A stretch of DNA of 64,000 nt from Trichosphaerium sp. ATCC 40318 (Eukaryota > Protista > Tubulinea), in the NCBI GenBank assembly GCA_038496445.1, contig JALMLS010000255.1, positions 248,001 through 312,000 on the forward strand, given 5' to 3'. Positions 8,251-63,700 of this stretch are shown one piece after another (position 1 is the first letter of the stretch; the number at the start of each line of letters is the position of its first letter). A program made the position numbers and the translations under genes. Under the pieces are notes generated by a model that saw only the letters and a list, made by a program, of their open reading frames with translations, was not told the DNA's origin and ran no database searches.

Positions 8251-10532
8251 TCAAGCGTCCAGTAAAGCATCCATGTATGTCCATGTTATCTCTTTGATGA
8301 GACCCCTAGCGCATAGGTATGTCAGGTATTAAACAAATAAAAATGAGATAGTACCGATCTGGAAGAGATGCGCACATGCCATAGACTGGTGCACTGCCAT
8401 TCTATGTAAAAATTAGTGAGCTGACTTTACTCCACAAAAAGAGGTAATAAAAGAAAGTGGCGGTTAAGTACTTTGACAGTAGGGTTCTTCTTAACGAGTT
8501 CTATGGAGTCCTTGATATCCGCCAAGAATTTGTCTACTTTACCAACTTGGCGTAGAGTAACGCAAAGATGCAATCTACACAGACGATTATGGTGATATAA
8601 CGGTTAGGTAATATAGTAGACTTACCCTTTTGGTTTGTGCAAGGCACTCAGGTTCCAGCCCTTTTCTGACATGTAGTCATTGAGGTTGTAAATGTTTATC
8701 GAGTCAATAGTATCCCATGCTATTATTGGCGAGAGCGAATCGCCCATCAACTTAATTTCTCTAATGGCTCTAAGGCCTTCTTTGATGTCCTTTGCGGTCT
8801 GCATTATCTTGTTAGAGGCGTCAAGATACCCTTTTTTGCCGTTAACCATCATCACTGCCCATGCCGCTGCAATAGCTCCACCTGGCCTAAACGCGTATGT
8901 GAGACAGAGATATTGGCGTTTAGATGTTAATTACCTCGAGCCAGGCATGGTTGGACTTGGGTAAATACCACCTGGCCACTCAGTCGCTACAAAAAACATG
9001 TAGTGGCGAATGTCCTACACAAAACGTCAACGCTTGGCAGGTGTGCGATGCAACTACATACCTTGTTTCTGAATAGAAGCGCAGATGTACCTTTTGGTGC
9101 AAAAGCGTACTTGTGTGTATCAGCTGAGATGGATGTGACACCCGGTAGACTAAAGTCAAATTCTGGAAGGTCCCATCCTTCTCTTTTTGCCCATGGTAAA
9201 ATGAACCTGTTGCCCATAAATAATTAGTGAACCTGTAGTTGGTGAAGAAACATAAAATTGTGAGGCGCGGTTGTATAACCTGACAACAACAAAAAAGAGT
9301 AAAGCGAATACATAAACAAAACTTACCCTCCAAGGCACATGTCTACATGTAGTGGCACACTATACTTGATGGCAAGGTCCGACAAGCCTGAAATATCATC
9401 TATGGTCCCGTGTGGATATCCAGGTGCTGATCCAATAAGAGCTATCGTATTCCTAGGAGCGCACATTCAGGAAAAGGCATAATTGGGGATGTTCTTACTT
9501 GGTAATAGCGCCTTCAAGTGCAGCCATGTCTACTTTGAAATCGGATTTGACTGGTATTTTAACTAGTTTAATGCCAAAGTAATGCGCTGCCTTGTCAAAC
9601 GCACAATGTGCCGTAACGGGCAAAACACTAAAGCAGATGTTTGTAAACAAGAAAAGTCTTAAACTCTGACCAAAAACAAGTTTTTAGAAAAGTCATCATC
9701 GTACATTTCTGGATGTTTGATGCCTTTCTTGGCCAATGCTTGATCTCGGTATGCCTTGCATGCCATCAATAGGCTAGGTACGAAAGTAAGATGACAACAA
9801 TTCTGGTAACAAAAAAAAATACCTCTCCGTGCCACCAGAAGTAACCACACCACAAACTCCCTCGTCGCCGTTGAGCATACTTCGCGTAAAGCGCACAATT
9901 TCGGCTTCAAACTTTCTTACGGCTGGGAACAAGTCCAAATGCAGCGGGTTCGCCAAGCAAAACAGTTCGTACGCCTTGTGCGAAGGGTAGTTAGCAGCTT
10001 ACAGAGAAGGGGATGCAAGCACCTTTGCGGAGAGTTGAACAAGATCATCTGCACCGCTGTAGACGGCTCCTGACACGTAACCATCCTTCCACGTGGTGCC
10101 TTCTTTCTCTTTGAGCTTGGTCATGACCTGTATTACGTCTGCGTGTGAAAGGCCTTCCTAGTTGTTCAATCAAAATGAGCCGAAACGTTCCGTCAGCAAA
10201 CAAAACGGGAGTACCTCTGGTAAATCGCTCAATGGATTGTCGTCGAAACTAGACACGGTTTGGCGTATCTTTTGGGCAATTTTGACATGTTCATCCTGTA
10301 TTTTCCCTGACACTCCCGGAATATTACGTATCTGCTTGAATAGCGCGTCCTTTAAGTCTTGCGTAATTTTTAGCACCATTTTGTACGAAATGTATTACGA
10401 ACCCAAGTCAGCGAAGTAGTGGTTGTATAACGCTACCCCAGCGAGCGTAACACCCGCACCGCCGACTACTAATTTCCACGGCTCGTACGTTGCTAAACGA
10501 GCGTTTATATCTGCAGTTATGGACGATAGCAT
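8251..10532 (-). CDS. SGPL1: Sphingosine-1-phosphate lyase (PLP-dependent)
   Basis: [64 protein letters not shown] (PLP lysine), [21 protein letters not shown]. Confidence 0.95.
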
Positions 10533-32788: not shown

Positions 32789-34274
32789 TTAAAAGTTGAC
32801 CAAAGAGATTCTGGCAACAGCTCCAAATCGATTATCCGAGTATTTTGTGCGAATAGTTTTAAGGCCAGACTTCTGGATCTTGTGTAAGATGGTGTTCAAG
32901 TCGCCAACGCAATCCATAAGATCTGTGTCTTGCAGTTTTGTATAGTGTTCCAAAGTGCGTGTCTAAACAATCCAAAAATGATAAGTACTTGGAGGTTGCA
33001 TTCACTTTCAGGTAAAAACGAACGTACCCAAGCAGGATGCACATCGAGCATTGTTCGCGCAACATATACGGCAGAAGCGGCCCACACAGAAGGAGGGTAC
33101 TTGTCAAATTTGAGGTCAAGAAGAGGAAGTTCAATCAAGTACTTGGACAACGTATGTGTTCGCCAATCTAAAACATACATGTTAGCAACGTCATCATTAT
33201 TCACATGTTTGCAAAAGCGTGGTACCTGACATGGCTGCTTTGCTGAACCGACGGAGAAAGTGAATTGCGGTAGGTACAGTAAGATTAAATTTGAGCTGAT
33301 TTAATATACTGCATTCCATCGTTAGTATTTGCTCCTTAGTGTACGCTCTAAAAAGTAATTGCAAGTTAGCCTTAGGGTTTTACTAGTAAACAAAAAAAAA
33401 GGTATCTGCGTACTTGTCGGATATGTAGACAAAGTCATCACACTCTGGAGGATAGATCTCCTCGTATTTAGCGGCTATAAGCATGGAGGTTACAGCAACC
33501 AATTGAAGTTTGCCTCTGGCAATAGGTCTGGCTTGCAAGAAACGGTCCATGATATTGACTGTTAAAAACAACGTCTCCGGCAATAGCTTGAACTTTAGGT
33601 GGACTGCGACTGCCCAATCAACAAGGATGGCACGCATGCGCTCGTTGATGTCTGGCTGGTTCTTCATGTACGTTGGATCAATAGGGGCACAATTCTAAAG
33701 GCCGAATCAATAAGAGAAAACGAAAAGGAGTTGGTGAGATGCAAATGACAACCAACCTCACGAGCAAACAACACTTCATAGATTTCGTCTACGTATCCTG
33801 TCACAGCTTGAGGATCGTCGCCATCGGTGCAGTCAATGTTTTGATGACGTGGTTGGGGCTTGTCTATGACCATAGGCGACAGTGGTACTAATTCAGCCTA
33901 AACACTCTTAGCACGTACGAAGCATTGACGCAGCGTACCTGAGAAGGTTTGTTGTACGCATTGTTTGGTTTTTTGGAAATTCTTTGTGGTTTTGCTCCTG
34001 GCCATGCATTTATTAGCCGTTTTTTTCCGGCGGGCTTCTTAACCTTAGAGTCTGTTAGATATGGTAGGGTCCGGGGTTGTTTGGCGCGTAACGGGCCGAA
34101 ATGTATTTGTACCTTATCTTTGAAGTTGTGAGTTTGCCCTCTGAATGTATTGGTGATGTTAGAGAACGGCGCATTTGTATTTTTGCGCGTAGGGTTCGTA
34201 GAGTGGCAAATTTCGCGGTCTGAAAGTTGCTGGTTTTGCTGCTGGAAGGGTGCCCTATTGCGTATGCCGTACAT
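32789..34274 (-). CDS. B-type cyclin
   Basis: [12 protein letters not shown] cyclin box, [48 protein letters not shown]. Confidence 0.95.
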
Positions 34275-35429: not shown

Positions 35430-36625
35430 ATGCTCCGTAGCGCTAGGTATTGTAGAGGGCGCTCTAACCGCTTAGTGGTAAACGAAAGCCAAGTGTTTGA
35501 GGCTGTTGCGCGTTCATTGGGCGTTAAAACGCTCGATGGCTGCTACGATCTAACTGCTGGCGATCTAAAGACTGCTGGTGCCAAAAAGCTACTGTACAAG
35601 TAAGTATAATTCGTTAAACTGTTTGTACGCATTATTTTCAGGTACAATGACTCTATATCGACGACACTCAAGAGTGTGTACCCGCACTACACATGGGAAC
35701 ATTGTAAATTCAAGTAAGGCTCCAAACGTCGCTACGACAACTAATGCGCTTAGATGGGTTCCAAAAGGCCATTGGGATGCAGTGTCAAATCAAAGGGCGG
35801 AGTTGAATGACATGAGCGCAAAATTAAACGTAAAAACGCTGGACGACTGGTACACGGTTACGTGGCGGCAGGTTATGCGGCTTGGTGGTGGTGGCTTACT
35901 AAAGAGGTGCACATAACGCCAAGGTGCTGACAGCTCAAGTTTTGTCGTAGGCACCGCTCGTCACTGCATAAGACACTTGTTGCGTTGCATCCATCTCACA
36001 ACTGGGATACTCTACGATTCAAGTACGTACAGATTGCTAGCTGGGGTGCACTAACCGCCACTAAAGTCGACCAAAGCGATTTTGGCACGATGAAGACAAC
36101 GCCTTGGTGTTCCTCAAACGCGTCGAATCTAATCTCGGCATCGCTCATCCGAAATCCTGGTATTGCAATCCAAAATATGTGCATTTTTACGCTTACAGTT
36201 TGCGAATAGGACTCAAGTATCACACGAACAACTTGCACGATTGGGTGGTCGTGGTGTAGTGCCTCATGTTTGGGCGTATCTAGGGGCAATGTACCCGTTT
36301 TATTCGTTTCCACCACGCCCACCCAGAGCCTCTAAACGAGCGGAGCAGATGTATGTAATGTAGATTTGTATGACGCCTTGGTTAATGTTTTATTTTTAGT
36401 CTGTTGCGGCGTCTTCTTTCAAACACTTTTACCAAAACGTGATTGATTAACGGCTATGTATTTGACAACGCCAAAGAGAAGAACAAATCAAAATGACTGA
36501 ACCTACCAGGTTACCCGAACAGCGCATCCGGTTAGCAGCCTTTAGTGAAGTGCGCCCCAACACGGACATGGGTATGTTATTTTATACTCTTGTCAATCCT
36601 CTACCTTTTCTCGTTGACAGATTAG
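35430..36625 (+). CDS. LDDWY-type repeat protein, paralog 1 (3 repeats, no nuclease domain)
   Basis: Repeats such as WVPKGHWDAVSNQR...LNVKTLDDWYTV...GGGGLLKRHRSSLHKTLVALHPSHNW. Confidence 0.75.
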
Positions 36626-38323: not shown

Positions 38324-41300
38324 TCACGTGTCTCCAGGCGTCACCTTGCGTCGTTTCTTTTTAAGACTTGCAAATGGGCCACCTTTTTGACGATTGTTAG
38401 TCCACACAATATTGGTTTTTATAACAAACAATATGCGTACTTAGTTTTTGGTCAGCGTGCTTTCTAGCAACGCATGTTTTGGCTCGCGCAAAGCTTCCTC
38501 GTCGGTAAAAAAAGTCACAAGAGTGCGTGTCATAGACAAGTTTGTAATTGTCCTGAGGTCTAATGAATGCCTTCAATCCATTTCGCACAAACTCCTTTTT
38601 TCGGGAGGTCTTGTTATTCTTCTGCTGGTACAAGACCCGTTTATTTCTAAACCCAAGTCAAAACGTGTGCAATGGTTTACACTGTAAAAACCGAATTTAC
38701 AATGGCTTACCTGTTGAGAAATACACGCCTTGTGCTCGTACTCAGGGTGTCATCAAGTACGTACTGCTTTACGTATGATGTCCACTTGAGTTGATCAACG
38801 TTCAAATCTGCTTGTCCAGGTTGCAATGAAATTTCCATAACACGTCTTTTCTAATTGCCAGAGTTTTAACAAATGGAAAGCGCAAGTGATTTACCAAAAA
38901 AAAGAAAAACTTTCTATGCGCGTACTGGGTTGCATTCTAGCCTAATTATAGGAGCCTTTACCCCAATCACATCTCGACATTCTTCGAAATACGCCAGTTC
39001 GGTCTTTGTGTTAGAAGCAGTGTAAGCCTCCAATAGAGTCTTTACATCGGGGTCCAACATGAGCCTCTTGGCCTATAAGTGCGGGTTGTCAGAGTGAGAT
39101 GCTCTTGAAACAAATTATACAGCTGCACGTACGTGTTCTAGAAAGCGTTGTAATGTGCGTTGGAAGCCATATAGTACAAACGCTTCCGGTCCAAAATAGC
39201 GCAAACATCTGTCCTCAAACAATGCAGATTCCAGTTCTCCCTAGGGTACTGTTAGGCTCATTAAAGGCGCCATGCGACGTACATCAATAAGCTGGTTTAT
39301 CCAATCCAAAAACATGCCGTATTTGTCTGTTGAAGATATGCACATGCCTTCTTCCTTCTAAACGTACTGTCAAAACGCACCCAACTGGGTAGACAAAATA
39401 TTAATGTAGGTACCTCATAATCAGATTTCTCTTCCTTATTGCCGTTGGATTGATCTTCAGCAGCCTCTTTAACAAGCTGATCTTCACTTGAAATAACAGA
39501 AATCGTAGTCTCGGAAGGCTTTGGTCTATTTGGAGGTTAGTATGCTAATGATTGCAAGCGTATTTTGGGTACCTGTCTATATTGGTGTAAACCCAAGTCT
39601 GGGAATTGTATTTTGACCAGGTATACGCTTTCTCAAGCACTTCTTGACAAGTCTACAACGTCGACTGTAAGTCATTTGTACTAGGAATGTAGTGGAGTGG
39701 TACCTGGTAAATACGATACAAAGTGTACATTTGTACGCTCAAAAATATTACATGGTTTCCTTCTTTAACCTGGGCGGTGTATGCTTGGCGTTCGAGATGT
39801 GGTAGAGTCCGAACAAATGGTTTTGGCATATTTTTCCGCCGCCTCTTTGTGTTGCTTTGTTGTGTCTGGTGTACGTTGTCCTGTGAACCTGCATCATCCA
39901 TACTTGCGTCTGCACTCGCAGCACTGGTGCCATTTGGTATCGCTATGCTGTGTGGAGGCGTCATGAGACAACCGACAAACCCTTTACAAAATGCCAAGAC
40001 CTACAACCGCAATAACCGCCTTAGTTCAGTTTTAAGGTACAAAAAATAAGGCGTACCTCATCAGTTTCGTTGATGGGAAATATCTTTGAAGTAAATGAAG
40101 TGAGAATAGCGAATAAATCAGTTGTGAAGTTGTTATCCCCTAACTTAAATTTGAGGTGGTGATCAGGGTTAGTCGCCGATTCTGCAGTCATATGGTACGC
40201 CTTCATCACTTCTGCAAGTACTCCTATTGCCAAAACGGTTAAACAACAATTGAGTAGATATTAAGGCTGTATGTACCTTTGGGTCGCCGTAATTGTTTTT
40301 GTGTTTCGCGATAGAGAAGACTCGCTTTGTCTTTAGACAGATGATGAAATCGCCTATATTTCTCGCTCCACGTTTTGGCCCATGCACGCTTACACGTTTT
40401 CCATTCAGTAAGTCTATTCGTCATGTCTACAAGTGGTATGAGTGCCCTCATGGTGAAGAGCTAAGTGTACCTTGAAGTAGTTTAGGAACAGCGTCTATAG
40501 GATTGTTCTTTAACGTGTTTATTGTCAGGTGTGCTTTGTCCTTGTAAACACGCCTTATCAACCCGACGTGTATTTCTATGTTGGAACAGTGTTACAAGTT
40601 GGCAAATGGACATTTTACAAATTATCCGTGTAAAGACGGTATAGCGTACCATGAAGGCAACTCACGTCCATTTCTGTGTTATGTGGATTGGCTTTAATTG
40701 CCAGTTCGAGCTCTTGAAGAATAGTAATCAAGGACTGCGATTGGTTTATCAAAATGTCCATCTCATATCTACAACCCTCAGTCAGTTTTCAGAATAAATA
40801 AAATGGGTTTGTGTACTGATCTTCCTCTACGCGGAATAATACATCCTCGTATGGGTTGACTAGATTGTCCTTGAATGATCCTTCAGCACCAGATGGGACA
40901 ATCATATACCGTGAGTTTAGAATACCTTCTTCAATCGCTGTTTGTTGAGACGAACGTTGATTGCGCCGAGCCTACACGGTAAATGAGGAACGGCCAAAAG
41001 TACTTGTTGTATTGCTAGCGTACGTATTCAGGCAGTATGACGTAGCTGGGGCCTAAGCGTTTTAAACTGTCCAAGTCTAACTTTGATACATCAATGTCAC
41101 CTAACAACGTAATTCACTCAGCACATTGCTTTCAAACAACCAACAAAAACTGGAGTGAGTGCGTACGGGTGCGCTTTTGTCTTTTAGAATTTTCTCGGCG
41201 CATTTTGTTGGCTAGATCTATAAACTCTTGTGACTTGGTACCCCTATTACGCGTAAATTGTGTTGCACATTGCAAAAAAAAAAAGGGTTGGGCGAAGAAG

Positions 41301-42500
41301 GCTCAGGCATTAAATATAAAACGTACTTCACCAATTTGGACATGTTATGAATCATCTCAGGGTTGTCAGCGAATAGACTGGCAAGTTTACGTTTGAGGTC
41401 CGCAAAGGTAATAGAGTTCATTACATATTTCATCATGTGGTCCAGAAATTTTTTGTACACGTCCTCTGCGTAGTGTGCCTTTGGTTTACGTTACAATTTT
41501 TTTTGGTTGCAGTATTATTGAAAAACAAATTCTGGTGGTACCCGCAGTTGTTTAATAAATTCTCCTGTAATCTTCTGAAACTCTGGGGAACCGAATGGCA
41601 TGTCTCTATCCTACAAAAAAAGTTATAACCTTAAATAAACTCCAAACAAACAAAAAAAATTTAACGAGTTTGTTGCGTGCCTTCTTGGCTCGTTTCCTTG
41701 GCCTGCCTTCCTGCTTTGGTCTTCCATTTATATTTACATTACTCATTTTTCGCTTCTCAAGGGTTCTACGCTGTTGCTCTTGTTGCTGTCGCTTTTGAAA
41801 ATGCAGAGTATGCACCTTTTTACCGCATAAGTTATAATTCAACATGTCAAAGCGCATTGCCGGGTACTGGCGAGGAAATGACGCACTGGTATTTGGCTCT
41901 CGTTCGGCAAAAATTGATTAAATCCCTCTAACAAATCAAAATGATCCCAAAACAATTTGATGACATTGTTTACCAAGGCAATGATTGTCAATCTAGCACA
42001 AAGAAATATTTTAATAAAAGCCATTTTTCAGTTTAGACATTTAATATTCAAAATGTCGGCCTGTACCTCGATTCCTTGTATTGTTTTATCCAGTTTATGA
42101 ATAAATAATATACACCTTTCCGTTCAGGGGTACTGAAGCGTTGTCTAGCTGCAGCGAGATAAAGTCGTCGGCGCTTTTCGCTTGGCACTGTTTGGCACGC
42201 GTAAAATGCGACTTGTTCGGCTTTTCTAAATGTTGTAAGTGTTTTGTAAATGAACTACTGTCAAAATCTTCCTCCAAACAGATAATTGGTCTCCAAAATG
42301 ACTCAGAAAAGTAGTAAAATGCTCAAATTACACGATTGGGCGACTTACGTTGGTAGCTGTTCAAGTTTCTCAACAGCGTGGAAAGGAACGGTCGGTGGGC
42401 GAAGTAGCGGGAAGACTGACGGTATTGGAGCTTTTTGCAATGTGAAGGGTACGCTTTCACCTGTTTTGACCAAATCTTGCGTGTTAGAGTTAGAACTCAT
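38324..42500 (-). CDS. SIN3: Sin3-like corepressor (PAH + HDAC-interacting domain)
   Basis: PAH VIKLFWDHFDLLEGFNQFLP and YKKFL..LASLFADNPE. HID LGPSYVILP, NPYEDVLFRVEEDQYEMDILI, VPKLLQ, WAKTW. Confidence 0.82.
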
Positions 42501-43668: not shown

Positions 43669-45904
43669 TTACTTTTTGGCATAAGTCTTTGCCCGCAGTT
43701 TGTACGTTATCACGGGACGTAATATAGCAACAATGGTAACTAAACCATGAGAAACGAGATCATTGACTACAGCTTGAATGTCCTATTACTAACGTTAGCT
43801 AACATTGTATCAACTCTTTGGTACCTTGTAGGCGTCTGGCATCTCCTCGTAGAGCAAGTCCGAATCTTCGCAGATAACTTTACTGCCAAGGGTCGTGGTT
43901 TTAAGGTTGTGTGCATTCATGTTTTTTCCGCGTTCACGGCATTTCGCTACAAAACCATCAGACAATCGAAAAGGTAATGAGATTGAGGTAGGTACGTACA
44001 CCTAGTCCATCGTCTGCCAGCGCCATGAGCAAGCGAGAACCCTCCTTTTTGGAGGGCACCTTGAAGTCCATTAGTGTGCGGCTAATCTTTGAGCATTGAC
44101 GACGTACTTGTATCTGAAACAGGTTGCACTAGATAGCTGAATGCACCACGACTGCCTGGTATTACTACGACTGATTTAATACCATGCGCAGGTGTATTAT
44201 TACTTTGTTATTCGCGCACCTACTAGACCCTTATCGCTTGGTGCTGCTCCTTTTCTATGAAGCCACAGTTCATCTACTTTCCCGTCTTGCGTTGCAAATT
44301 GCTTTGGTATCACACAATTGTGCCACACCTACAGAATCCAAGTTAGCTAGAATATCACCTAACTTCGAGAGCAAGTACGTCAAGGATACGTCTTGATCCG
44401 TCAGATATTTGATCATCTACAGGCATCTTCCGAATATCATGATCGCCGATATTCTCGGCTACTTGTTGTGCTTGCTCTTCTTCTACATTCAACATACAAT
44501 TTAAGAATCGGCGAGCAATCAGAGCCCTACATATTAACGTTACTACCTTTTTGTTTGCTGGTGCTATATGAGCAACCATCATTCATACCTATTGCATCTA
44601 GCCCAGCACATAGCATGGTTGTGTTTCTTCAAGTACGCTTTAGCTTCGTCAGTGCTGTCTACAATTCTACAGATCTCAAGTTACTAGCCGTCGCCAGCAC
44701 AAATATGAATGTCTTTAGTAGTACCCTTTGTATCCATGTTCAATCGAGTAGTCTTTTAGAATCTTAGCACCAAACCCTCTAGATCCAGAGTGTACACACA
44801 AATATAGGCTGTCATCATCTAATAGAGAATTGTGTTATTTATAACATCTAATGCAACAAAAAATAGTAACTGAGACTTACTTAATTTGTATGCTTCAAAC
44901 AGTTCAGTATCTACCACTTCCTCTATCTTAATGCGTTAGTGATGTTCTAGCTATGACAAAGGGAGGGAGGTACTTGTTGAAGTTCAGCAAAGTGGTTTCC
45001 GCCTCCAATAGAGCCAAGTGACTTGGCATCAAAATCAGTGGGTTCTACACCTCTCGCAGCCAAGAATTGTTTTGTGTCTCCATTCCACGGATCATCTAGT
45101 CCTCTCAACGTCTTAGCCCACTTGTCTAACTTTATATTCTTGGTTGTAAGCGATGTGTGATACAAACTCATGCCACAGCCTAACAGAAGATTAAATGCGT
45201 TTAATTGTGGAATGTGGTTGTGCTTACCAATGTCATTGCCCACAAGCGCTGGATAGAACACTCCACTGCTCGCGCAGGCAGCACCTATTGCACAACCTTT
45301 TCCGGGGTGCAAGTCTTGAATTTCAATTAACGCACGTGTTGGATAGGACAGTTTGTGTACCTGGCATGCCCACTACGTATTTCATACCGTGCATCTTGCC
45401 TGTCGCAGTTAACTGCTTCATAGCGTCGTTGGTTACCCTAATGGGTTTGTTACTAAGGCGCGGACGTCGTATGCGTACTGGCTCTCTTTTGCAATAACAC
45501 TAACGGCACAACCTTTGTTTACAGCTTGACCACCTTCCAAACCAACTATTTGCTGCGTATTCTTTACCTTGGGCGTATGTGCGAAGTCCTCACCTAATAA
45601 CAAACGAATAAACTATTGCTACACTTTAAAACGCGCCATACCTTTGGAAACATATATGACCATATCGTTTTTTACCTTATCTGGGTCTTTAAAGTCTGTT
45701 TCGAGCAATTCATCTCCGTACTCATTAAAAAACCTGCGAAATCACTTATTTACGCGTGGGCTATTGATTTTACCTCTTCGGTTTGATTCGTAGCTTGTTA
45801 GTGGCTAGTTTAAAGAAAGTCGCATAATCGCCGACCTTGAACAATATTGGCGATCCCCTGGAATCACCAGCGTTTTTTTGTACTGTTACGCGTATTTTTG
45901 ACAT
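43669..45904 (-). CDS. RtcB2-type (release factor H-coupled subfamily) RNA ligase with N-terminal DCX/ubiquitin-like domain
   Basis: VVGMPDLHPGKG, LVGNDIGCGM, SIGGGNHFAELQ, VHSGSRG, VWHN, LHRKGA, PGSRG, SLAHGAGR, EEMPDAYKDI. Confidence 0.92.
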
Positions 45905-45995
45905 GTACAGGTTGCGTAAATATGAGTTTGGATTAAGTATGGATAACTGAACGAATCACGGGAATTTACCAACTTTCAAACAATCTGTGTGCTAA

Positions 45996-47467
45996 CTATT
46001 TTAATAAGTCACTATACAAAGCTCCATCTTGCTCGAGTACTTCACAAGCAATTCTTATTTCTTTCAAGATAAAGTGTTTCAATGAATAAAATGTCACTTG
46101 ACGTGTCACATTTTGGTAAGGAGTTCGTGGCCTAATACGGGTTAGTTTGAGCATTTCTTGAAGCACATACCTTTCAACGCAAAACACTGTGGAATCTGTA
46201 AACTTTTCAGCCTCCTTTAGTGTTATACCACAGTGGCGTATGGATATTCTGTGTGTCTTGTATTCAAAATCAAGTACCCACTGTAGAAAACCTTTCAGTA
46301 AATCTCCAATCGGTGTGGTGTTAGTAGTTTTAAAGTCAGATGTAAGGTCGTCAATATTAGGCACAACGCCTAGTGTTTGCAAGTAGGCAACAACCATTAC
46401 AGTCCATCCAAATGAGTTGATTTTACCAGAGTAGGCGTCATTAATGCCTCGTTTCTTTGACCAGTGGCGCACTGCCCACAACAATGGTGCCACACGGTCG
46501 TCCATCCTAGGCAGTATTTAGGCAATGTAGACGTCCAAAGAGTTGATTAAAGTACTGTATAAAGTTACGGAAAGTGGTGCTAATCTGCAGTTTGTCCAGC
46601 TTCCATATCGATAGATCAAGCTGTAGTTTCGAAAACGAGTCATCTATTGTAAGTAATGGAATACGTGCCAGCAACACCCGCTTGACACTACAATCAAAAT
46701 AAGTTTATGGTAAAAAGAAGCAAGTAGGCAAAACCTGAGTATTGGAGACTCAACGCTGTCAATAGCATCAGCGATGCATGTGAGGAGTTGTTGTTCTGGT
46801 ACTTTACTAATGATGCTCACATCAATGTCGCTGGTTTCATCATCTAGCCCACTTTGTTGTGTTAGGTAACGGTTTGTTTTGTGTTTGAACTGAGGTCATA
46901 CTGTGGAATTGAGCCGTATACTTCCAGTTTTGCTTCAGGGAAAAGGCGTCCTACAACCTACAACCACGTGTCACAAATTGGAAAGACTCTGACCACTTTT
47001 TTTGTACCTTCTTCACAAATTTGCAGAGGCATTTGCGCCGTCTAACAACTAAAATTGTAAAACAGGTTAAATATAAAAATAGGCAAAATAAATGTCACAT
47101 ACTTAGTTTACGTGGTCTGCTATTAGCGTAGTGAGCGAGAATAGATTCTGTAAGTGTTTTGCAAGGTTCAGGTGCTCGTTTAGGCAGTGGCTTATTTAGA
47201 CTGAACATAGCGTTGTGAAACTCTTCAGATAGCGTAGAAAACTGTTCTTTGTACATCTCTCGCATTTGTTCCGTTCTCTTTTCTAGCTGTTCGCTTGAGA
47301 GGCGCTCAGCCTCTCTGTCTTGTCTACCAACCTCCGCATAATGATGGGTGATGGATTTGAGATGCTTTTGGTACTAATAGCGGTTTAACGGACAGAAGCC
47401 GAGTCCAGGTTTGTACATTTTGTTCTTTATCGAACTTCTTATCACATACTCCACAATGGAGCTCCAT
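45996..47467 (-). CDS. Cid1-like terminal nucleotidyltransferase (TUTase / non-canonical PAP) with N-terminal C2H2 zinc finger
   Basis: MELHCGVCDKKFDKEQNYQKHLKSITHH. YGS...SDIDV, ARIPLL, VRHWSKKRGINDAYSGKINSFGW, PAP-associated LLKGFL..FEY..ISIR. Confidence 0.9.
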
Positions 47468-47541
47468 TGTAACGTTTTGTGTTTTGTATTTTCAAGCGAT
47501 TTCTTGATTTATTGAATCATTCACCTTCATTTTACAAAATA

Positions 47542-48692
47542 ATGTTTAGTGTTGAGGGAAAAGTTGTAGTTATAACTGGAGGTACAGGTGTATTGGGTTC
47601 TGCGATGGCTAAGGGTGTCGCTGCTAAAGGAGCCAAAGTTGGTACACTACAAACATTAAACATGTTTCTGTAACTGTCGTAGTTGTCATTGGCAGAACCG
47701 AAGCGAAAGGTAAAGGGGTTGTAACTGAAATTGAGGCCGCTAAAGGACAAGCAATATTTGTCAAAGCTGACGTGGTACAAGAAGACCAGTTAGAAGCTGC
47801 CAAGAAGGTATACTTTGAGTTTGTGTTCGTGTTCCCAACATTTGATTTTTAACCAAACGCCTTAGGCCATTCTCGCCAAGTGGAAAACAATCGACGTACT
47901 CGTTAATTGCGCTGGAGGAAATCAAGCAGGCGCAACCATAACGCCAGATAAGACCTTCTTCGACCTTGAGATACCGGCGTTTAATAGCGTTGTTAATTTG
48001 AACCTATTAGGTACCAACAGTTTCTTGGTCACGTGACACCACACATGTTAATTTTTTGAAAAGGGACCGTTTTACCAACAAAAGTTTTTGGCAAACAAAT
48101 GGCTGAACAAAAGACTGGCTGCATAATCAACATCTCGTCAATGGCGTCACAACAAGCCATAACCAGGGTAGTTGGCTATTCGGCCGCAAAGGCTGCCGTG
48201 GACAACTTTACACGCTGGATGGCTACTGAAATGGTGACCATAAACCGAACTTTCACTTAGGCTTTGCACTAACCGCATATAAGGCACTCAAGTATGGTGA
48301 AGGTATTCGCGTGAATGCGATAGCTCCTGGTTTCTTCATAGGTACGGCATTAACATAAAACAATATTCTAATGTTCCTACAATAGCTGAACAAAATAGAA
48401 GCCTATTGACGAACACTGACGGAAGGTACTTAATTGGGACAACGCTCGCTCTTGCATACAATCTTACACATTGTAGTCTAACAGACCGAGGTAACACTAT
48501 TGTTACAAATACACCAATGAAGAGGTTTGGAAAAGCTGAAGAACTGGTTGGTACGCTCATCTATCTGAGTAGCAACGCAGCAAGTTTTGTAACAGGTACT
48601 CAAAACTATTTTGCCATCCCATCCGTAACTCAGTATTTCAAGGTATTGTCATACCTGTCGATGGCGGATTTAGCGCCTTTAGTGGTGTATAA
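47542..48692 (+). CDS. SDR oxidoreductase, D-mannonate oxidoreductase (UxuB-SDR)-like
   Basis: TGGTGVLG, NCAGGNQAGAT, NISSM, TRVVGYSAAK, IAPGFFIAEQNR, TPMKRFG, PVDGGFSAFSGV*. Seven introns. Confidence 0.9.
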
Positions 48693-48733
48693 TAAACCCT
48701 TGTGTGGTATTTTGAATTATGCTTAATCTTGCT

Positions 48734-50757
48734 TTATTTCTTGTCAACAGCCTTACCTTCTTCTGAGGCTAAATATTGATGGTACAGAGTACCAAATTTA
48801 TCATTCGCCTGAATGATTCTTTGTTCTACCGACATGGTGTTATCCGTCTTGACAAGATTCATCCACCATTTTATAAATCCTCTTCCCATGACAGACCACT
48901 CTTGGTGGTGCTCTTTACACCCAGGCACATGGTGTAACGTACTCATACCACGTCCAATGCGCCCACAAGATTTAGAAGTGAGGTCTTCAATAGCTATTGC
49001 CAGCATTAGTAACATTGCAATCAAAAACTACTAAAAGTTGCGTGCATATGGAGTTGGCCTTTTGTCCCTGTTTTGGTTTTTTGGGACCATCAATGCCAAT
49101 CACTAGATTTCTTTGTATTGGGTTTACAATTGTAGAACGGAAAGTTTCTCTGATGCGTCTCCAGATGACATAAGAACTCGCCTTGATCTTGATCAGACCA
49201 AGAACAGCGTCGTTTTCGCCCAAAACGTATAAGACGGCTCCCTCAGTTCCCTTGGTGTCTCTTATATCATTAACCTATCCACAATTAGCTATATTACTTC
49301 AAGATCAATGCATGGACGTACCTGTGCGTCTAATTCAGCAAAAGGGTGCTCAGAGTGCTTAACACATTGTAGAGTATGTTTTGTGAAAAATCCAAAGGCT
49401 ACAGGGTTGGTATTAATAATACACACGTGCATTTGGATAAACATAGTTCTTGTTGGCTATTACCTTGTTTTGGGTGGATAGGGCGAGCTGTAATCTTATC
49501 TAACACAAAAGCGTTAGTACTTGCAGATTAATGGAGTTTCAAAAAGAGGCATTATTCAAACTTACCGAGTACGCTATAGAATTCAATGTAAGTTTCCTTG
49601 ATTGGGAAAATGTGTTCGTGGCACTCCAAGTTGATCTCACCCATCATGCTCCCATATTCTACCGCACCTTCCAAAAATGCTATGCACAGTAATTAGTTGA
49701 GCTACCTAACAAATCATTCTACCTTGCTGCTTCGCTTTGTCGAGCGCCAAGAACCACTCCGATACTGCCTTTGCCACAAATGGACCCGGTAACGTTTTGT
49801 TGGCACATGAGTAGTATTCTGTAGAAGGTTTGTATGCTGGCCAAGCTAGGCAGGTATTTTTTGAGCCTGCAAGAAAATAGAAGGAATCTAAAGACTACTG
49901 TTAACCCTCAAATTGATAACTCAAAAATTTAAAAAAGAGCCACCTTTAACTTGGATCACGCGACATTTGGCGTTTTCACCGTTGGACTTTTCTGTCCGGT
50001 AGAAGGTCTTAGCGTCGCTTAATTTAGCACCTAAGAGGATCAGTATTGTACGTTGTATTTGTAGTATCACAAACCATTAAAAAAGAAATTGGCTTGTGAG
50101 GAGTTGCTCTCCTCATCCTCATCACCAGCTGTCAGTCCTGTAAATTTTGGAATCCCGGTAAACTCCACACTGTAGAAGGGTAGTTATAAAAAACCGCGTG
50201 GTGCTGACGCTTACCTTGCGAGACATTGACCTTGTTTGTCAGTAACAGTCACATGATGAAATCCTCGTGGCAACAACTCCCGCAATAGTGGTGACAACGT
50301 GTAGAGCCCTTTTTTGAGTGAGACCAAGCGAGAACTAGTGTACTTACCATCATCACTAACGCCACCAGCAGTTTTCTTGTACTTTTTGCCCGTAGGGTCT
50401 TTTTGAAGCCATTTCTTGAATCCCCAAACATCTAGCGAGTACCCCTAAGCGCGTTGGTACACAGGTAGTGTAATTGGAACAACTGCCAAGGAAACGTCGT
50501 ACAATCGCTTTAAACGCGTAGCCGTCAATATTCATCTCCAGTGGGCGTGCTAATTTCGCGAACTTGTGTTTTTCAAAAATAGATGTTTTAAACGTCGTTT
50601 TTTCCCACCCCGTAGCGTTGGTGTACTTAGCGTATAACTCATTGATATCTTTGCCGTCTTCTACGGTTGGAATTCTAAACGATTGATCTGTGTAAGCGGC
50701 TGTTTCTTTTGCGTCAGGTGCTGTTGTATTCGCCATTGTGTTATTGATGTTCTGCAT
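48734..50757 (-). CDS. Stand-alone ATP-dependent RNA ligase-like protein (T4 Rnl1 / Trl1-ligase-like)
   Basis: LPRG, GIPKF, motif I TEKSNGEN, GSKN, GEI..HEHI, motif IV EGAVLY, motif V LIKIK, then YVIWRRIRE. True start may be ATG 50736. Confidence 0.72.
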
Positions 50758-50763
50758 TCGGTG

Positions 50764-53283
50764 ATGCAGAAAACTCCTTTTATTTCAAATGTACTGCCAA
50801 ACACCTCATTGCTATGTAATATGACCAAAAACCTCTCATTTGCAAATCGTACGCGTCAACGTCGCCTGCAAGAGGCATTGAAAGAAAAAAAACGTAGAAA
50901 GGATAAGCAGTGGTGGGCAGACACCAGAAATCAACTACATTTCGTAGAGCATGTTGTAGCGCCAAAGCTTGAAATAAAAACACTAGATGAATTTTATACA
51001 AAAGGAACGACAGATGACATACGTACCCTAGGCGGGCAGACACTACTAACTAAGTATGAAACTCATTTAAAATAATACAAACAATTTTTTGAGGGGTTGG
51101 GTCAATAAGCGCGATTTTCTGGCTAGATTGTATCCCAAATACTCCTGGGACTTCAGGCTCTTAGTTTCGTACGTTGTGTCCATGTATAGCTTTATTTAAG
51201 CAAATGGTTAGTACACCACACTGCCATTGGGATAGCCTGGCGAATCAACGTCGTCGTTTTGACTACATAGCAGAGCAATTACAACTAAAAACATGTCAAG
51301 ACTGGTACACAATAACACGCCGTCAAATCTCGAGCACTGGAGGTAGTGGCATAATACGCAAGTGCGTGACGTTATTACAGTGACCGATTTTTTCTTTCTG
51401 ACATTTGTTACAAGGTACGACTCGGTACTGGCTAGAGCAGTCAGCTCCATTTATCCACATTATACATGGGATTCTTGGCGCTTTAATTTCTTCGATGCAG
51501 CCGAAAGAAATTGGCTTGAAGTTGCTGCAGCACATTTGAATTATAAGATACTGGATGATTGGCACAATGTCACGCTTGAAAAGCTAAATCACCCTACACT
51601 ATCCAGCTTAAAGTCTCCCACGTAAGACACTGTGCAACATGCTTTTGATTTATAATAACGTTGCAGACAAGCAGACACCATATTGGGCGCTCTCCAAGCG
51701 CAATATCCGGAGCACAAGTGGGAACTGTGGCGATTTGAGTGCGTCAAAACGGAATTAATTGAGAAAATGCATTCACACTCTTTCATGCAGGTGCGCACCT
51801 GCAGGCTATTGGGACGACGTCAACATGCGCAAGGCTTATTTCGATAATGTGGCATCTGAAGAGCTGGAAGTGTACACTCTTGATGATTGGTATGACATCT
51901 CCATTTTCGAGTTTGGGAAAGTAGGCGGTTATGGTTTGTTAGCAAGGTGCGCCTACAACACTTGTAATTCATTTTTAATAGTGCAACAGGTATAATGGTT
52001 CAATTACTCTTGCACTAGCATCTTTATACCCTGAATATGAGTGGGTCATGTGGAATTTCAGGTACGCTTAACGAAGCATCACCCCAGCTGATAAGAATAG
52101 GTCTGTACCTAATAAACACTGGTTCGACATTGAGAACCAACAAAAGTACTTTGATGCCACAGGCAAAGTGATGGGTATAAAGACAATGGAAGGGTGGTTT
52201 AGAGTAACTGCCAAGATTATTGCAGAGCATCACAACGGAGCAGGATTGCTCAAAAGGTAATAGTGGTTGTAATTTAGTCAACTTAGTGGAGTAGGTATAA
52301 CTTTTCAATACACGCGGCTCTGGAGGCTGTCTATCCAAACTTTGATTGGAATCAACGACGCGAAGTGTACGTTGTAACTAGATTTAACTACCTAATTTAA
52401 TGCTTAATAAGGATTGATAAACCACGTGGATACTGGTACCAAAAAGAGAAGGTGGTCAATTTTCTATCGCTGGTTGAAGGCAAAATGCGCATTTCCGCTC
52501 CGGAAGATTGGTACCCGTGGTATTAGTTCGCTTCTTGCAAACAATTGATTTAGGTATCGTGTATCTATGGCACAGATTAGAGAATTTGGCGGTGCTGGAC
52601 TATTGCACAGGCATTATCCGCGCGCATTGAAACATATGTATCCCAACCAACATTGGGTGTGGAACAACTTCAAGAGCTTTGACAAGCGCGCAGCACAGAG
52701 GTATCTTATATACCCTGTTTTTTGTTTCTGAACTGGTGCTAGGGCACTTTATGATAGAGTAAAGGAATTGTTTCCAAACACAGCGATTGAAGAAGAACAC
52801 AATATTGGTTTTAGCGACATTGTTGCAAGGAGTCAACTTACTCTGGATCTCTACATACCAAAGTACAGTCTCGCACTTGAGTATCAAGGTACACGCTTTG
52901 ATTACATATCGTTGCTCAGTAGCGTACTAGGCGAACATCACTTTGATGATATCATGTCAATGACTGGGCCCACGTCCGTCTATAGAGCTAGAGATGAAGA
53001 GAAAGCAGCAAGGTGCAAGGCCATTGGCATCAACCTCGTACCTGTACCATATTGGTGCGTCTAAAGTACCGTTAACAGTGCCTGACTCGGTAAACTTAGG
53101 TGGACAGGAGATCTTGCTTCGCTTGCAGCTACGATTATACACTACTATCCTCATACACAGATCGCGCTTCGTTTCAATCCCCATACTCCACCGTTGGTAG
53201 GCAAACCACACTCGATACGTACGCACTTTGAAGCCATTCAACAATCTAAGACTACTCTACAGCTACTTTTAAACGCAGCATGA
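50764..53283 (+). CDS. LDDWY-type repeat protein, paralog 2 (6 repeats + C-terminal PD-(D/E)XK/DUF559/RAP-like domain)
   Basis: Six repeats, then LTLDLYIPKYSLALEYQGEHHF...RDEEKAARCKAIGINLVPVPYWW. Confidence 0.8.
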
Positions 53284-57787: not shown

Positions 57788-60516
57788 ATGCGAACAAGGT
57801 ACAAGAGCCCGCAAAATTGTAATTGACCCGTTCAGCCGCTTAATAGCACGTACGAGCGAGCGTGCTTACACCGAGCACCATGTATTGCACTTTAACGCAG
57901 TAGCGAAAGATCTAGGTGTTAAGTTACTGAGCGGTTGGTACACTGTGGCTACAAAAGACTTTGCTCTCCACTCTAGCCTCCTGCGCAGGTAAATGCAATT
58001 TTTTTTTGACAGGTGTCACAATCCGCGTCATGACTCCTCTTGCAGATACAACAATTCTCTCCAGCGCGCATTAATACACAATTTCCCACAGTACGAGTGG
58101 GAAGCTTGGCGCTTCATGTACGCAAGTGTCGTTTGGTTTGAAGCGTAACAATCTTGCAAGAAATACACGCTCAGGGTACTGGAATTTCGTTAGCAATCAG
58201 CGTGACCAGTTCGACTACTTTGCGGAACTACTGAATATTAAGTATTTGGATGGATGGTACAATGTAGTGAACGATGACATTCTACATCTGCCATCCGGCG
58301 CAAGCATTTTGCAGAAGTACGGCCACCCCTTCGAGAAACTCGTTTTGTTTTGTTTTGTCTATTTGCTCAACCTGTGTGCCAGGTACAACTTCTCCCTTTC
58401 AACTGCCTTATCGACTATTTATCCTCAATACTCTTGGCAGATGTATCGGTTTCTGTAAGCAAGTATCCATGAGATGGCGCTCATATTTATAATTAGGAAT
58501 GCTCCAAACCAGTATTATGACTCTGTAGACGCACAAAGATACAAACTTGAGTACGTCGCAGAGGCTATAGGTGTTGCTACCCTTGACGCTTGGTACAATG
58601 TATCTTGTAGCCAATTCATTGAGTATGGAGGTGGTAGTTTGCTGCAGAGGTACCAATGATTTTACAACACTTCAAAGGTTGACGAATATTTGCAGATTCA
58701 GTAGTTCTGTAGAGTTGATGCTTCAAACTCTTCTTCCTTCTTACAGCTGGCAGTTTGTACCGTCTGTTGCAACTCAAAAAACTAAAGCTCAGATGAACGA
58801 TATAGCAGAGTTATTGAATGTTACAGAGGTAACTGAATGGTATACCACACTAGAATCCCAAATCGTTGAGCACGGTGGAGCTTCAATAATCAATAAGTAT
58901 GGGTCATATTTCAAGTTACTTGTTGCTTTGTATCCTCAACACAACTGGGACGAGAGCAGGCTAACGTACGTGCTCTAACTCATATCACTTGTAGCACCAC
59001 TAATCGCATCTATCCAGTAAATCTCAGCGGTATACAGAAGCCATCACCAAGGAGAGAAATACACTAATAGACATTGGCAAAAAATTAGGCGTCTCAAAGC
59101 TTGAAGATTGGTACAGTGTGCCAAAACGCAAAATACGTAAAGTCAATGGCAGCTTCTTTAGAAAGTACAATTTCAATCATCACCCAATACAACGCGCTAA
59201 TGTTTGCGCCAGATACCATTATTCTTTGTTGTATACTTTGCAAGTTGTGTTCCCAGAAGTGAAGTGGATACCCACTAAGTTCACGTGCGTTTGTAGTTTT
59301 TTACAACATTAGTTAACGACAATCAAGCGCACATAGCCTTCGCACGATGACAAGGCAACAACATGAAAAGACACTACAGACTTTGAGCCGTAAAATGGGA
59401 TTGAAAGTTTTGGATGACTGGCGTATTGTTAGCACAAAAAAAATACAACACGCTGGAGGTGCAGAAATACTTGCAACGTACTTCTGTTCTCTGTGCGACA
59501 CGCTGCAACTTATTCTGTTGAAGGTATCGAAATTCAATCTCCACTATGTTACGTGTTGTGTTTCCTTTCCATGAATGGACGTTTGACAAGTACCCCCATG
59601 GCTATTGGCAAGAAGAATCTAATCAAGTGGCGTTCCTTCTAGATGTCACCAAAAAATTACACATTACAGAGATGGCACATTGGTACTTTTTCACCAACAA
59701 CTTCAACAATTGCTTTTGCTCTAAACACATATGCAGGTATCGGGTATCTGGTAGTCAATTAGTGCAGCTTGGAAGTGCTACGATCGCAGCCATGTTCCCA
59801 CGTATACTACAACGGCTTGACCCAACTTTCAACTGGGATTGGTCACGCTTCGCGCCCTCCAAAGCAACACAACAGTAAGGCCACCACGAACGTATGTAAG
59901 ACCTAATATCGCTTTTTTTGCAGTTTGCTTGTGTCTCACCTCAGATCATTACTACCATACTGCTCCATTGAAGAAGAAAGATTTATTGATATCCGGGATC
60001 CTACAAGCGGCAACTTGTCCGTTGACATTTTCATCTCAGAATACAATTTGGCGATAGAATACCAAGGTACGATAGTGATAAGCACGTGATTTGCGGAGGT
60101 GCACCTCTTAATGTTAGAGTAGGAGAACAGCACTTTCATGACTTGATGCCCCAGGGAGCTCCGTCTTTATCAATTCTTGCGCGTGATGCTGAGAAGGCGC
60201 AGCACTGCAGCGATGCAGGTAATCTTAGTTCTACGTAACAAAACTCTCATATTTTGAAACATAGGCGTCAGACTGTTGATTATACCGTACACATGGAAAG
60301 GTGACATAGATACCATTGCCGCCACATTAAATTGGTACATTCCTGAGATAAACTTGCCTGTATCCAGCGCTGTAGTGCCACTGTCAGCGGTGCCACCAGG
60401 TCTTAAAGGTACAAAGCCTATCACAATGATTTATTTATGTTAACAACATGTTTACAGATCAACAGCGATTCATGTCACCGAGATCTTGCCTAGTTTCTTC
60501 GAGCACAACATCATAA
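57788..60516 (+). CDS. LDDWY-type repeat protein, paralog 3 (~7 repeats + C-terminal nuclease-like domain)
   Basis: Repeats, then LSVDIFISEYNLAIEYQGEQHF...RDAEKAQHCSDAGVRLLIIPYTW. Last exon uncertain (stop at 60443 or 60516). Confidence 0.8.
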
Positions 60517-60703: not shown

Positions 60704-63700
60704 ATGACCTCCTGGCGAGTGTCAGAAGGAGTTGTAGTGGGTACGTGCCAAATAGACGTTGTTTTCGTTTCTTTGTTCCTAACAGAGCTGGCTAGTTGTG
60801 TACCCGTACAAGGGCGAAAAAACACACCACATTGCACTCAAATTTGGGGACCTAGTGCGCCTTCAAGAAGAAACCGCCGATGGCGGTTGGTACAAGGGCG
60901 AGGTCATTAAAACCAAGCAAAGGGGTGTATTTCCTGCAAGTTTTGTTCAACGTACACGGAAGGTAGAACCAGTAATGGTCGAGCTTAGGGAAGCTATTCG
61001 CGAATGGAACAAGTTAATGAAGGATTTGTTTATGGCACGCTCCATTTCAAGCACTATGCATAATTTTGGCCAAATCCGCAATTAAACGCTTATTCAACGT
61101 AACAGGCACGAAAAACAGCAAAATACAAGCAAGTCAGTCACAGAATTGGCGTACTGCTCACTTGGTATCGGAAAATGACAAATACACCCAGTGGCGTAAG
61201 GCACATGCCATTTGTATTATTTTCTTATCATTTAATAGCGTGAAGCCGAGCGAATAAAGGCGTTAGTGGCTGATAAAATAGAAGAGGCAACTATTTTTTT
61301 TTTGTTTCTCTTTTTCTGCTGGCCATCAGCCCTCCAGTTAACAATCCTATAGGGTAGAAGACTTATGGGATTAGACATGATGGTACGTACGCCATCAGGA
61401 GATGCTGCAACAGAGGTGAACACGCCCATCATCGAGTTGTACAAGCTGGTAAGTGCCGATCTATCAATATCATAATTTTTTGCACATGTCAATCTTTTGT
61501 TCTCTATGTCAGTACACTGATATAAATTTTTTTTATAGCATAGGACATTTAAAGAAAAAGCGTCTCATAGTTTAAACCAAGAGAAGCCTGAAATCAGTGC
61601 GTGTTGTTTTAGTGCGTGAATTCAAATAATAATTCATTTTCCCTTTGTAGCACCTACATCAATACGTCACATGTTCTTCCATCGACTTGTGTTAAATAAG
61701 AAAAACTCCAAAAGAAGTAAAAAGACTAGGTTTGGTGGACCTAGGAGACACTTGCTGTTGGAACTGAAGACGCTTATGTTCAAAGCCGGAGAACCTACTG
61801 AACAGACTGAACTTTTTTTCAGCTTGTATAGCCTCTCCAAAGCACAAATGCTAACGGAGCCATACCAATTAGTGTTGACACAACAAGGTATGCCCGTAGA
61901 CGAGAACAAACTAAACAATATGCGAACTATCTTTGAGGTACATAGCTCCTTCCTTCATAAAAAGAGCATGAGAAAAAGGTAACATTATTATAGGACGTAA
62001 CGCACAAAGAACTTCTCTCAGATATTTGGATTGTATGCCGTGTTGTAAGGGCAGGGTCACTGCTAGGTAAAAGTACATCGAAAAAGACAAAAGAGTCAAA
62101 GCAAGCACTAGTGCGCATGCCGTTTGCATGTGGTGTACTCAATCTAGGAACAGGTAATGACATATTTTACTGAGTACATTCATCCAACTAAAGGACATTG
62201 TAGCATCACTAAAGCTCAAAGAAACAGAGAATAATATCGGTCTATATGCCTGTAAAGATGATCAGTTCTGGAATTTGCATGAATGTACGACCCAAAGTGC
62301 TTGTTATCAGCGCATTCAAGGTTTGCTCACATTTATCCTAGTTATTATAAAGAAACAAAATACAGCAACACAAGGAAACAAAACACAACGCAGCAAAGAA
62401 CCAAAAATTACAGAGTTACCAAATAAGGTATATAGAGCGCACTTTATCAGAACAGGGAAAACAGATTGCTAAACTATGGTTTAGGGACTATGCCTTGGCT
62501 TGACTATAATAAACGGAGAGCTTAGCCAATGGAAGGGTGCCAAGGCCAAAATATGCACAACAAGAAGGCTCAGTACGTTTTTTGTTTATGACTTCTCTTA
62601 TGTTTAAATAACAACTAATTCAAAAAACCAGAGCCTGTTTTGAATCCAGAAGGCTATGTTGGTCGTAATGATCTGTATGTTTCGGTTCCTGAGGTAGTGT
62701 TTGGTGCAAGTGGTGCTCCTAGAAACATTGAATTGACGATTCAAGTCAGACAAGCCAATGGCAAGGTAAGATAAGATTGAATCTGACATGATCTGTTAAT
62801 GGTGACTAATTTTACTGGCAGATTGTAGACGGCGCAATCGTTACTGGAGTTGGGGAAGCAAAATCCTCAGAATACAAATCGTGGATAGTGCATCACAGCA
62901 ACCAGCCCAAGTGGGGAGAGGTTGTTCGTATAACCATACCGCCTTCCATGTTTCAACATTGCCATCTATTTCTCTCTTTTCGCCACTGTACATCCCATAA
63001 AGGCACGTTACATCCTTTTATCTAGATTATGTCTAACGTATTGAACCAGATAAGGAGAAAGATAACTTTGCGTTTGGTTTCATTCGTCTCACCAACCCAG
63101 ATGGCCATGCCCTTGAGGTACGAAGTTACAACATCCTCTGCTATCCATAACCAGTATGTAGGACGGCGTGCGCAGTGTTGAGGCGTACAAATTTGCAAAA
63201 GGGGTAGATGCTAACTCCAAATCAAAAGCATTTTGGTTGAATGCAAAGGCACTTACTGCTAGTACGCTCTAATGGTAAATACCTACACGTGTGTTTATTT
63301 TTTTTATTAGATGATGATAAAAAAGGCAAAGTTCAATTGCGTAAGGGCGATAGTATCTCTATACAAACAAAACTTGTGTCTGCCTCAATCACGCAAAACA
63401 GTACGCTCACATATATCGATCAGTATTGTATGCTAATTGGTTTAAGATTGGCTACACTTGCTCTTACGTTGGGAAACATTAACACCTGCCAAACTCGAAG
63501 TTGTTTTGGGTAGGCTGACATTTATAGGCATCAATGAGATTGTCAAGGTGCGTAATCAACTATTAATCGCATAGTGAAGATTAATCAATGTATCCATAGT
63601 TCCTACCTGACGTTTTCAACGCAATGTTTTCTATTTTAGAGAAAGGACGAAACAAGTTTGCCTCATTAATGTGCGATCACAGCCACTCTTTAACTTCAAC

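Follow-up and report, generated by a model that had tools for sequence, protein, structure and literature searches.

Three RNA-end enzyme genes in close proximity in an amoeba-like protist genome: a possible eukaryotic RNA-repair neighbourhood

Three genes for enzymes of RNA ends lie close together in a 64,000-nucleotide stretch of the Trichosphaerium sp. ATCC 40318 assembly (contig C14:248001-312000, hereafter the window; the assembly is eukaryotic and comprises 70.3 Mb in 642 contigs): an RtcB2-class 3'-phosphate RNA ligase, a terminal nucleotidyltransferase of the Cid1/GLD-2 family, and an ATP-dependent RNA ligase of the Rnl1/Trl1 type. To judge from their sequences, all three are genuine RNA-end enzymes with intact catalytic motifs, and probably active. 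The loci, each of a different kind, span 7,089 bp in an amoeba-like protist whose genome holds an unusually large RNA-repair toolkit, and the analysis shows how these genes are built, to which families and folds their products are assigned, that the catalytic motifs are preserved, and that the proximity is non-random. A shared role in the repair of RNA breaks is a reasonable hypothesis because the enzyme assignments hold and the clustering is statistically unusual, and we would put the chance that the three genes form a loose functional or regulatory RNA-repair neighbourhood at just short of even. An earlier reading of the window, made from the letters alone (the sequence-only reading), had proposed an RNA-repair module of wider scope; the enzyme classes, the unusual clustering, and a prokaryotic precedent (PMC12776372) speak for its core, while its nuclease component and its analogy with kinetoplastid editing fell away, and comparisons of low power found neither conserved linkage nor a common upstream motif.

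Open frames in the window are short, since introns with GT-AG borders break them up; these introns measure about 37-95 nt, and many contain a CTAAC/T branch site. Exon borders were set by hand on the printed sequence and then checked numerically, and the four resulting models (RtcB, nucleotidyltransferase, RNA ligase, and a neighbouring repeat-array protein with a nuclease domain, hereafter the repeat-nuclease) keep their frame from the ATG through to the stop codon, with introns of the canonical GT-AG kind and 0 internal stops. Families were assigned exon by exon, the joined spliced proteins being translated solely as a check of the frame. All five genes listed in the sequence-only reading are present where it had placed them, its outer bounds, 43669 and 53283, being the stop codons of the RtcB and repeat-nuclease genes, and RtcB, the nucleotidyltransferase and the RNA ligase do share one orientation, on the minus strand.

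By its profile matches, the RtcB gene is complete and belongs to the short RtcB2 class known from bacteria, as first proposed. Six of its exons are collinear on the NCBIfam profile NF007153 (positions 48-75, 77-143, 161-187, 238-267, 305-344, and 346-376; about 206 bits summed), and the exons are likewise collinear on TIGR03073, both profiles describing the short RtcB2 class, with a span of 48-376; in Pfam, the first large exon alone finds a match (PF01139). For ten of the 12 exons there are matches in uninterrupted RtcB2 genes, bacterial or viral, that lie on prokaryotic viral contigs, and one of these relatives is directly followed by a bona fide PrfH gene (250 bits) in a mobile-element context with an integrase. 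The motifs NDIG-CGM, GGGNHF, HSGSRG, WHN, and AHGAGR are all kept and line up with those of bacterial RtcB2; following E. coli RtcB, we take them to supply the metal-binding Asp, Cys, and His residues and the histidine nucleophile that accepts GMP. Plausibly, the gene extends further in the 5' direction, to an ATG at 45639 (MARFKVVIAKESQ...). When the genome was searched in six frames with NF007153, the window copy proved to be the only RtcB2-class gene of the genome, canonical RtcB being encoded elsewhere at two or three loci on contigs C71 and C98 (contig C421 duplicates C98).

RtcB2 normally partners PrfH on ribosomes cut by colicin E3 (PMC9304027), and overexpressed RtcB2 by itself gives some protection (PMC13166195). 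A genome-wide search with TIGR03072 found no PrfH partner in the protist, and none of the kind was seen in the window. The sole TIGR03072 match (C1:158270-158557; L013:1342-1968), considered as a PrfH candidate, reads as a release factor of the RF1 type, probably mitochondrial, and this eukaryote therefore has an RtcB2 without a PrfH partner. Compared with the RtcB2-PrfH ribosome repair module of E. coli ATCC25922 (PMC9304027, PMC9223846, PMC13166195), the window gene belongs to the same short class and has all the catalytic motifs, but it is a eukaryotic gene with 11 introns in a genome without PrfH, and its neighbours are instead a Cid1-type nucleotidyltransferase and an Rnl1-type ligase.

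The second gene encodes, by its sequence matches, a terminal nucleotidyltransferase of the Cid1/GLD-2 family, which is of eukaryotic type. Its exon 7 (111 amino acids) matches GLD-2 (E 2e-10), Cid1 (E 3e-8), CutA, URT1, TUT7, and TUT4 in the PDB, and the catalytic GS, DxD, and D motifs are present (YGS...SDIDVS...LDLS). Matches of the same exon to trypanosome terminal uridylyltransferases (TUTases) are weak (RET1-type, E 3e-5; TUT4, E 5e-4; MEAT1, E 0.24), as is the Pfam match to PAP_assoc (20.8 bits against a cut-off of 22.6). A TUTase in the strict sense is selective for UTP, for example through a residue of the Cid1 His336 type. The PDB alignments extend only into the first part of the PAP-associated region, and the best matches mix enzymes that add A, U, and C/U; the name TUTase, which the gene had first been given, thus holds as a family label only, the Cid1/GLD-2 assignment itself being borne out by the exon 7 matches and the motifs.

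The third gene was first described as an Rnl1/Trl1-like ligase, which is correct for what turns out to be a divergent clade, common to chlorarachniophytes and giant-virus-like contigs. An exhaustive protein search with its exon 9, which carries motifs IV and V, returned 29 relatives, and a tblastn search of 28 of them against the window reproduced exons 2-10 in order. On a family profile (A1) built from 13 full-length relatives, exons 2-6, 9, and 10 are collinear, with about 327 bits in total; exon 8 falls in the right order with a non-significant 2.7 bits. Nucleotidyltransferase motifs I, III, IV, and V can be recognised as TEKSNGEN (with the motif I lysine, KxNG), GEINLECHEH, EGAVLYV, and IKIK..Y..RR.RE, and every column that is invariant in the family alignment is kept (the lysine of TEKSNGEN, EG.V.Y, and K.K...Y..RR.RE). 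The fold was assessed on a relative rather than on the window protein: for the AF2 model of P0009 (pLDDT 86), which is about 45% identical to the window ligase where the two align in exon-wise tblastn, the ten best Foldseek matches are Trl1-LIG from four species and T4 Rnl1 (E 3e-7 to 6e-6, probability 1.0). Together with the motifs and the profile, this model supports the assignment to the Rnl1/Trl1 type.

This clade is very divergent from the ligase domain of fungal and plant Trl1 and from phage T4 Rnl1, with which it has in common motifs I (KxNG), III, IV, and V and, in the relative, the fold. Neither the ligase exons nor, at this locus, a six-frame search of the genome matched PF09511 (RNA_lig_T4_1), and among ten relatives tested only three did so, one of them above the cut-off (28.5 bits); PDB sequence searches with exon 9 and with the family profile gave nothing useful. 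Elsewhere in the genome, PF09511 has seven matches, each on a different contig, and four of these exceed the cut-off. The named relatives come from chlorarachniophytes, and others lie on contigs with giant-virus hallmark genes (PolB, RNR, dUTPase). Some are fused to other domains (P0018, P0033, and P0021; loci L022, L023, L047, and L048), namely an AAA_33 (polynucleotide-kinase-like) kinase, a tRNA-ligase kinase with CPD (in one of the three relatives that match PF09511), or Sortilin-Vps10, and the kinase and CPD fusions, which recall Trl1, mark the clade as one of healing-and-sealing enzymes. In P0018, the order is kinase-CPD-ligase, opposite to that of Trl1, and the window ligase, unlike Trl1, has no kinase or CPD domain. 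The genome also holds an intron-bearing paralog of the ligase on contig C31 (about 303950-306400, minus strand; L019, L024), in which exons 1-6, 9, and 10 are recognisable and exon 9 is 50% identical.

To assess the clustering, we placed RNA-end loci uniformly at random on 70.3 Mb, counting, as lower bounds, 3 RtcB loci, 7 with PF09511 and 2 of the window-ligase clade, 6 with PF09414, and 9 of Cid1 type, 27 in total. The probability of finding three loci within 7,089 bp is 7.5e-5 with 27 loci and 5e-3 if there were 100, and for a triple that takes a single locus from each of the RtcB, Rnl1-like, and Cid1-like groups it is 1e-5 to 5e-5. The sequence-only reading had asked for such a test, and by random placement the triple comes out as unlikely (1e-5 to 5e-3) and as unexpected even when hundreds of alternative functional themes are allowed for. 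A second pairing occurs in the same genome at C5:113605-116363 on the plus strand (L074:2235-5117), where an RNA ligase (EKLDG, EGYV, and KVK motifs and a PF09511 match) precedes, at a distance of 2.4 kb and in the same orientation, a nucleotidyltransferase of Cid1 type (SDVDL motif; PAP_assoc, 47.6 bits). Coding sequence lies between the two matches, and since there is no opposite-strand gene between them, the pair is tandem or fused.

The window is most closely matched by the bacterial RNA-repair operon, rather than by kinetoplastid editing. Genes for the bacterial nucleotidyltransferase RlaP sit in RtcB operons and in operons of 5'-phosphate ligases (PMC12776372, citing Burroughs and Aravind 2016). 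These operons resemble the window in bringing a 3'-phosphate ligase, a nucleotidyltransferase of the Pol-beta fold, and a 5'-phosphate ligase into close proximity, and also in the proposed logic, in which lost 3' nucleotides are rebuilt before sealing. The window differs in that its genes are separate, monocistronic, intron-rich, and eukaryotic, that its nucleotidyltransferase is of the Cid1/GLD-2 family and not RlaP, and that RtcA and RtcR are missing from it. No match to RlaP (PF10127) was found on the window's contig, the sole two in the genome being an inverted pair on C253, a small contig (1821-2504, plus strand; 8053-8736, minus strand).

Enzyme activity, substrates, and any cooperation among the three proteins are what we infer. 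RtcB2 would use GTP to ligate a 5'-OH end to one that bears a 3'-phosphate or a 2',3'-cyclic phosphate, the Cid1/GLD-2-type enzyme would extend 3'-OH ends, and the Rnl1/Trl1-fold ligase would join 3'-OH to 5'-phosphate ends via a lysyl-AMP intermediate. Their targets may be tRNA, rRNA, or mRNA cut as a result of ribotoxin damage or stress. Clean breaks would be resealed directly by RtcB2; where nucleotides had been lost, or where the ends had been healed to 3'-OH and 5'-phosphate, the nucleotidyltransferase could rebuild or mark the 3' end before the Rnl1-type ligase seals it, the same logic as that proposed for bacterial RtcB-RlaP and ligase-RlaP operons. In its most specific form, this proposal would make the locus the equivalent, in a eukaryote, of the RNA-repair operons of bacteria, combining RtcB2 without PrfH, restoration or marking of 3' ends by a Cid1-type enzyme, and sealing by an Rnl1-fold ligase of giant-virus/protist type, the genes having been kept together by their joint deployment against ribotoxin or stress damage; so specific a form we consider rather unlikely.

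The chief alternative is chance adjacency, with each of the three enzymes serving a pathway of its own (such as the repair of RNA under stress, its tailing or turnover, and a separate healing-and-sealing route) in a genome that is compact and has many genes of this kind, and we hold this to be quite possible, if somewhat below an even chance. Several observations favour it and weigh against a functional neighbourhood. Conserved linkage, which the sequence-only reading had proposed to look for in related genomes, was seen neither at paralog loci nor at 40 loci with relatives, a comparison of low power. Exon-wise tblastn found the other two enzymes at none of the paralog loci (the ligase on C31, a nucleotidyltransferase on C81, and RtcB on C71 and C98), and where relatives of the ligase (29 loci, 213 kb) or of the RtcB (11 loci) are encoded, nothing turned up beyond the query's own family, most of these loci being viral or short and their power low. 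A comparison of the upstream regions of the three RNA-end genes, also of low power, found no common 7-10-mer. An unrelated gene stands within the run, and with genes packed at about one per 2-2.5 kb, neighbours come cheaply. The genome holds at least 27 RNA-end loci, the cluster was picked after the fact among many windows, and the P value was calculated post hoc, when many other functional themes could have been considered. Chance, on the other hand, has to contend with the genome-wide probability of 7.5e-5 to 5e-3 for a triple, with the second pairing of ligase and nucleotidyltransferase on C5, and with the recurrence of the same combination of enzyme classes in bacterial operons (PMC12776372).

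A relic of foreign DNA could also account for the adjacency, which would then reflect ancestry and not function: a bacterial-type RtcB2 and a giant-virus/protist-type ligase would have entered at or near one place and been intronised later. Among uninterrupted genes, those most closely related to the RtcB are indeed RtcB2 genes of bacteria, one of which has PrfH and an integrase as neighbours, and relatives of the ligase do lie on contigs with giant-virus hallmarks. The two genes, however, point to different kinds of donor, no viral or bacterial locus among those read carries both, and the nucleotidyltransferase, for which viral contigs yielded no relatives, belongs to a eukaryotic-type family. 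Every gene of the region is split by 7-13 introns, and there is no shift in base composition along it. We consider a foreign relic improbable.

The fourth gene, which the sequence-only reading had counted into the module for its nuclease-like domain, does carry such a domain but is not part of the module. It encodes five or six repeat units of about 75-95 amino acids each, in which motifs recur (DWY and GG.GLL, for example), followed by a domain in which the residues E..D..EYQG..H..D..K are invariant in an alignment of 14 paralogs. Neither its open-frame pieces nor its exons matched Pfam, and neither a nuclease exon nor a paralog gave a PDB sequence match. The fold was assessed on one paralog, L035, and not on the window copy: the model of the L035 domain has an alpha-beta-beta-beta-alpha-beta core (pLDDT 80-91), with Foldseek matches to PvuRts1I (E 3e-4), AbaSI, the R2 endonuclease, Vsr, I-Bth0305I (TM 0.68), and NGO0050, and the lead given by the ESM Atlas, DUF2726, agrees with a Vsr/DUF559 type. 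On this model, the domain is predicted to be a Vsr/DUF559-type PD-(D/E)xK nuclease, a type of DNA enzyme. The family, for which Pfam has no model, joins tryptophan-rich helical repeats of about 75 residues to this domain and is very large: a first look gave more than 1000 candidates for the repeat unit and 371 for the nuclease domain, and all 150 of the latter that were scored proved significant, so that there are at least 150 copies. Three copies lie in the window (about 35569-36206, 50821-53283, and 58075-59875, all on the plus strand). Because the family is so numerous and thrice represented here, the position of one copy beside the ligase carries no weight; adjacency is not above chance, and the repeat-nuclease is a bystander. 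On C31, too, a similar gene stands at 7 kb from the paralog of the ligase, a neighbourhood likewise without weight.

With the repeat-nuclease a bystander from a huge family, the idea of a machine like that of insertion editing is removed. In the kinetoplastid mitochondrion, insertion editing begins with the cut of an endonuclease, after which a TUTase adds U and a ligase rejoins the ends, and the editosome uses nucleases of the RNase III type and ligases of the Rnl2 type. The likeness of the window to the editing core complex (KREN, the TUTase KRET2, and KREL) lies in this abstract logic of cutting, adding, and sealing, in a terminal nucleotidyltransferase of the Pol-beta fold, and in the weak similarity to trypanosome TUTases already noted, which are all that speak for an editing function. 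Two of the three parts fail, the nuclease having a Vsr/DUF559 fold instead of RNase III and coming from a family with hundreds of copies, and the ligase being of the Rnl1/Trl1 type instead of Rnl2/REL; the nucleotidyltransferase is closer to GLD-2 and Cid1 than to editosome TUTases, and inspection of the N-termini revealed no mitochondrial presequence. Such a machine is very improbable indeed.

To our knowledge, it is uncommon in eukaryotes for non-homologous genes to be clustered by function. If the three enzymes do act together, the locus would offer a compact model of how a free-living protist mends RNA cut by ribotoxins and a eukaryotic parallel to the bacterial pairing of ligases with nucleotidyltransferases. 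Two features are of interest whether or not the enzymes cooperate: the presence of an RtcB2-class ligase although the genome lacks PrfH, and a clade of predicted Rnl1/Trl1-fold ligases that Pfam misses and that is common to chlorarachniophytes and giant-virus-like contigs. Many RNA ligases are also known from another amoeboid protist, Naegleria gruberi, for which 7 Rnl1, 5 Rnl2, 1 Rnl5, and 2 RtcB are given (PMC4408790). In the genome described here, the count of loci is 3 for RtcB, no fewer than 9 for Rnl1-like ligases, and no fewer than 6 for Rnl2-like ones, and a clustering of different enzyme classes is not mentioned in the available part of the Naegleria account.

Table 1. Genes of the run in the window, with positions counted from its first nucleotide.
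Feature	Position	Strand	Remarks
RtcB2-class 3'-phosphate RNA ligase gene	43669..45421	-	12 exons, 393 aa; possible 5' extension to ATG 45639
Cid1/GLD-2-family terminal ribonucleotidyltransferase	45996..47467	-	8 exons, 379 aa; N-terminal C-x2-C-x12-H-x5-H (C2H2) finger
Short-chain dehydrogenase/reductase (SDR) gene inside the run	47542..48700 (ends approximate)	+	four open-frame pieces against adh_short/adh_short_C2
Rnl1/Trl1-fold ATP-dependent RNA ligase, divergent clade (predicted)	48734..50757	-	10 exons, 494 aa
Repeat-array protein with C-terminal Vsr/DUF559-type PD-(D/E)xK nuclease domain (predicted)	50821..53283	+	14 exons, 631 aa

The coordinates of the five genes (Table 1) show how tightly the region is packed, with about one gene per 2-2.5 kb. 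The gene that interrupts the run is an SDR, as had been noticed at the outset: its four open-frame pieces match adh_short/adh_short_C2 collinearly (profile positions 1-30, 71-112, 110-168, and 192-228), and it is an ordinary gene and an unrelated neighbour. The ligase and the repeat-nuclease do stand head to head, their start codons lying 63 bp apart (50757/50821), and the starts of the nucleotidyltransferase and the SDR are about 75 bp apart (47467/47542), while the stops of the SDR and the ligase, tail to tail, are separated by about 35 bp (48700/48734). Several introns of the repeat-nuclease gene are a mere 37-45 nt long. Among the long open frames in the flanks of the window, no further RNA-related gene was found; the flanking genes sampled encode a cyclin (33386-33694, minus strand), a PAH-domain (Sin3-like) protein (41221-41490, minus strand), and an SH3 protein (60783-61082, plus strand).

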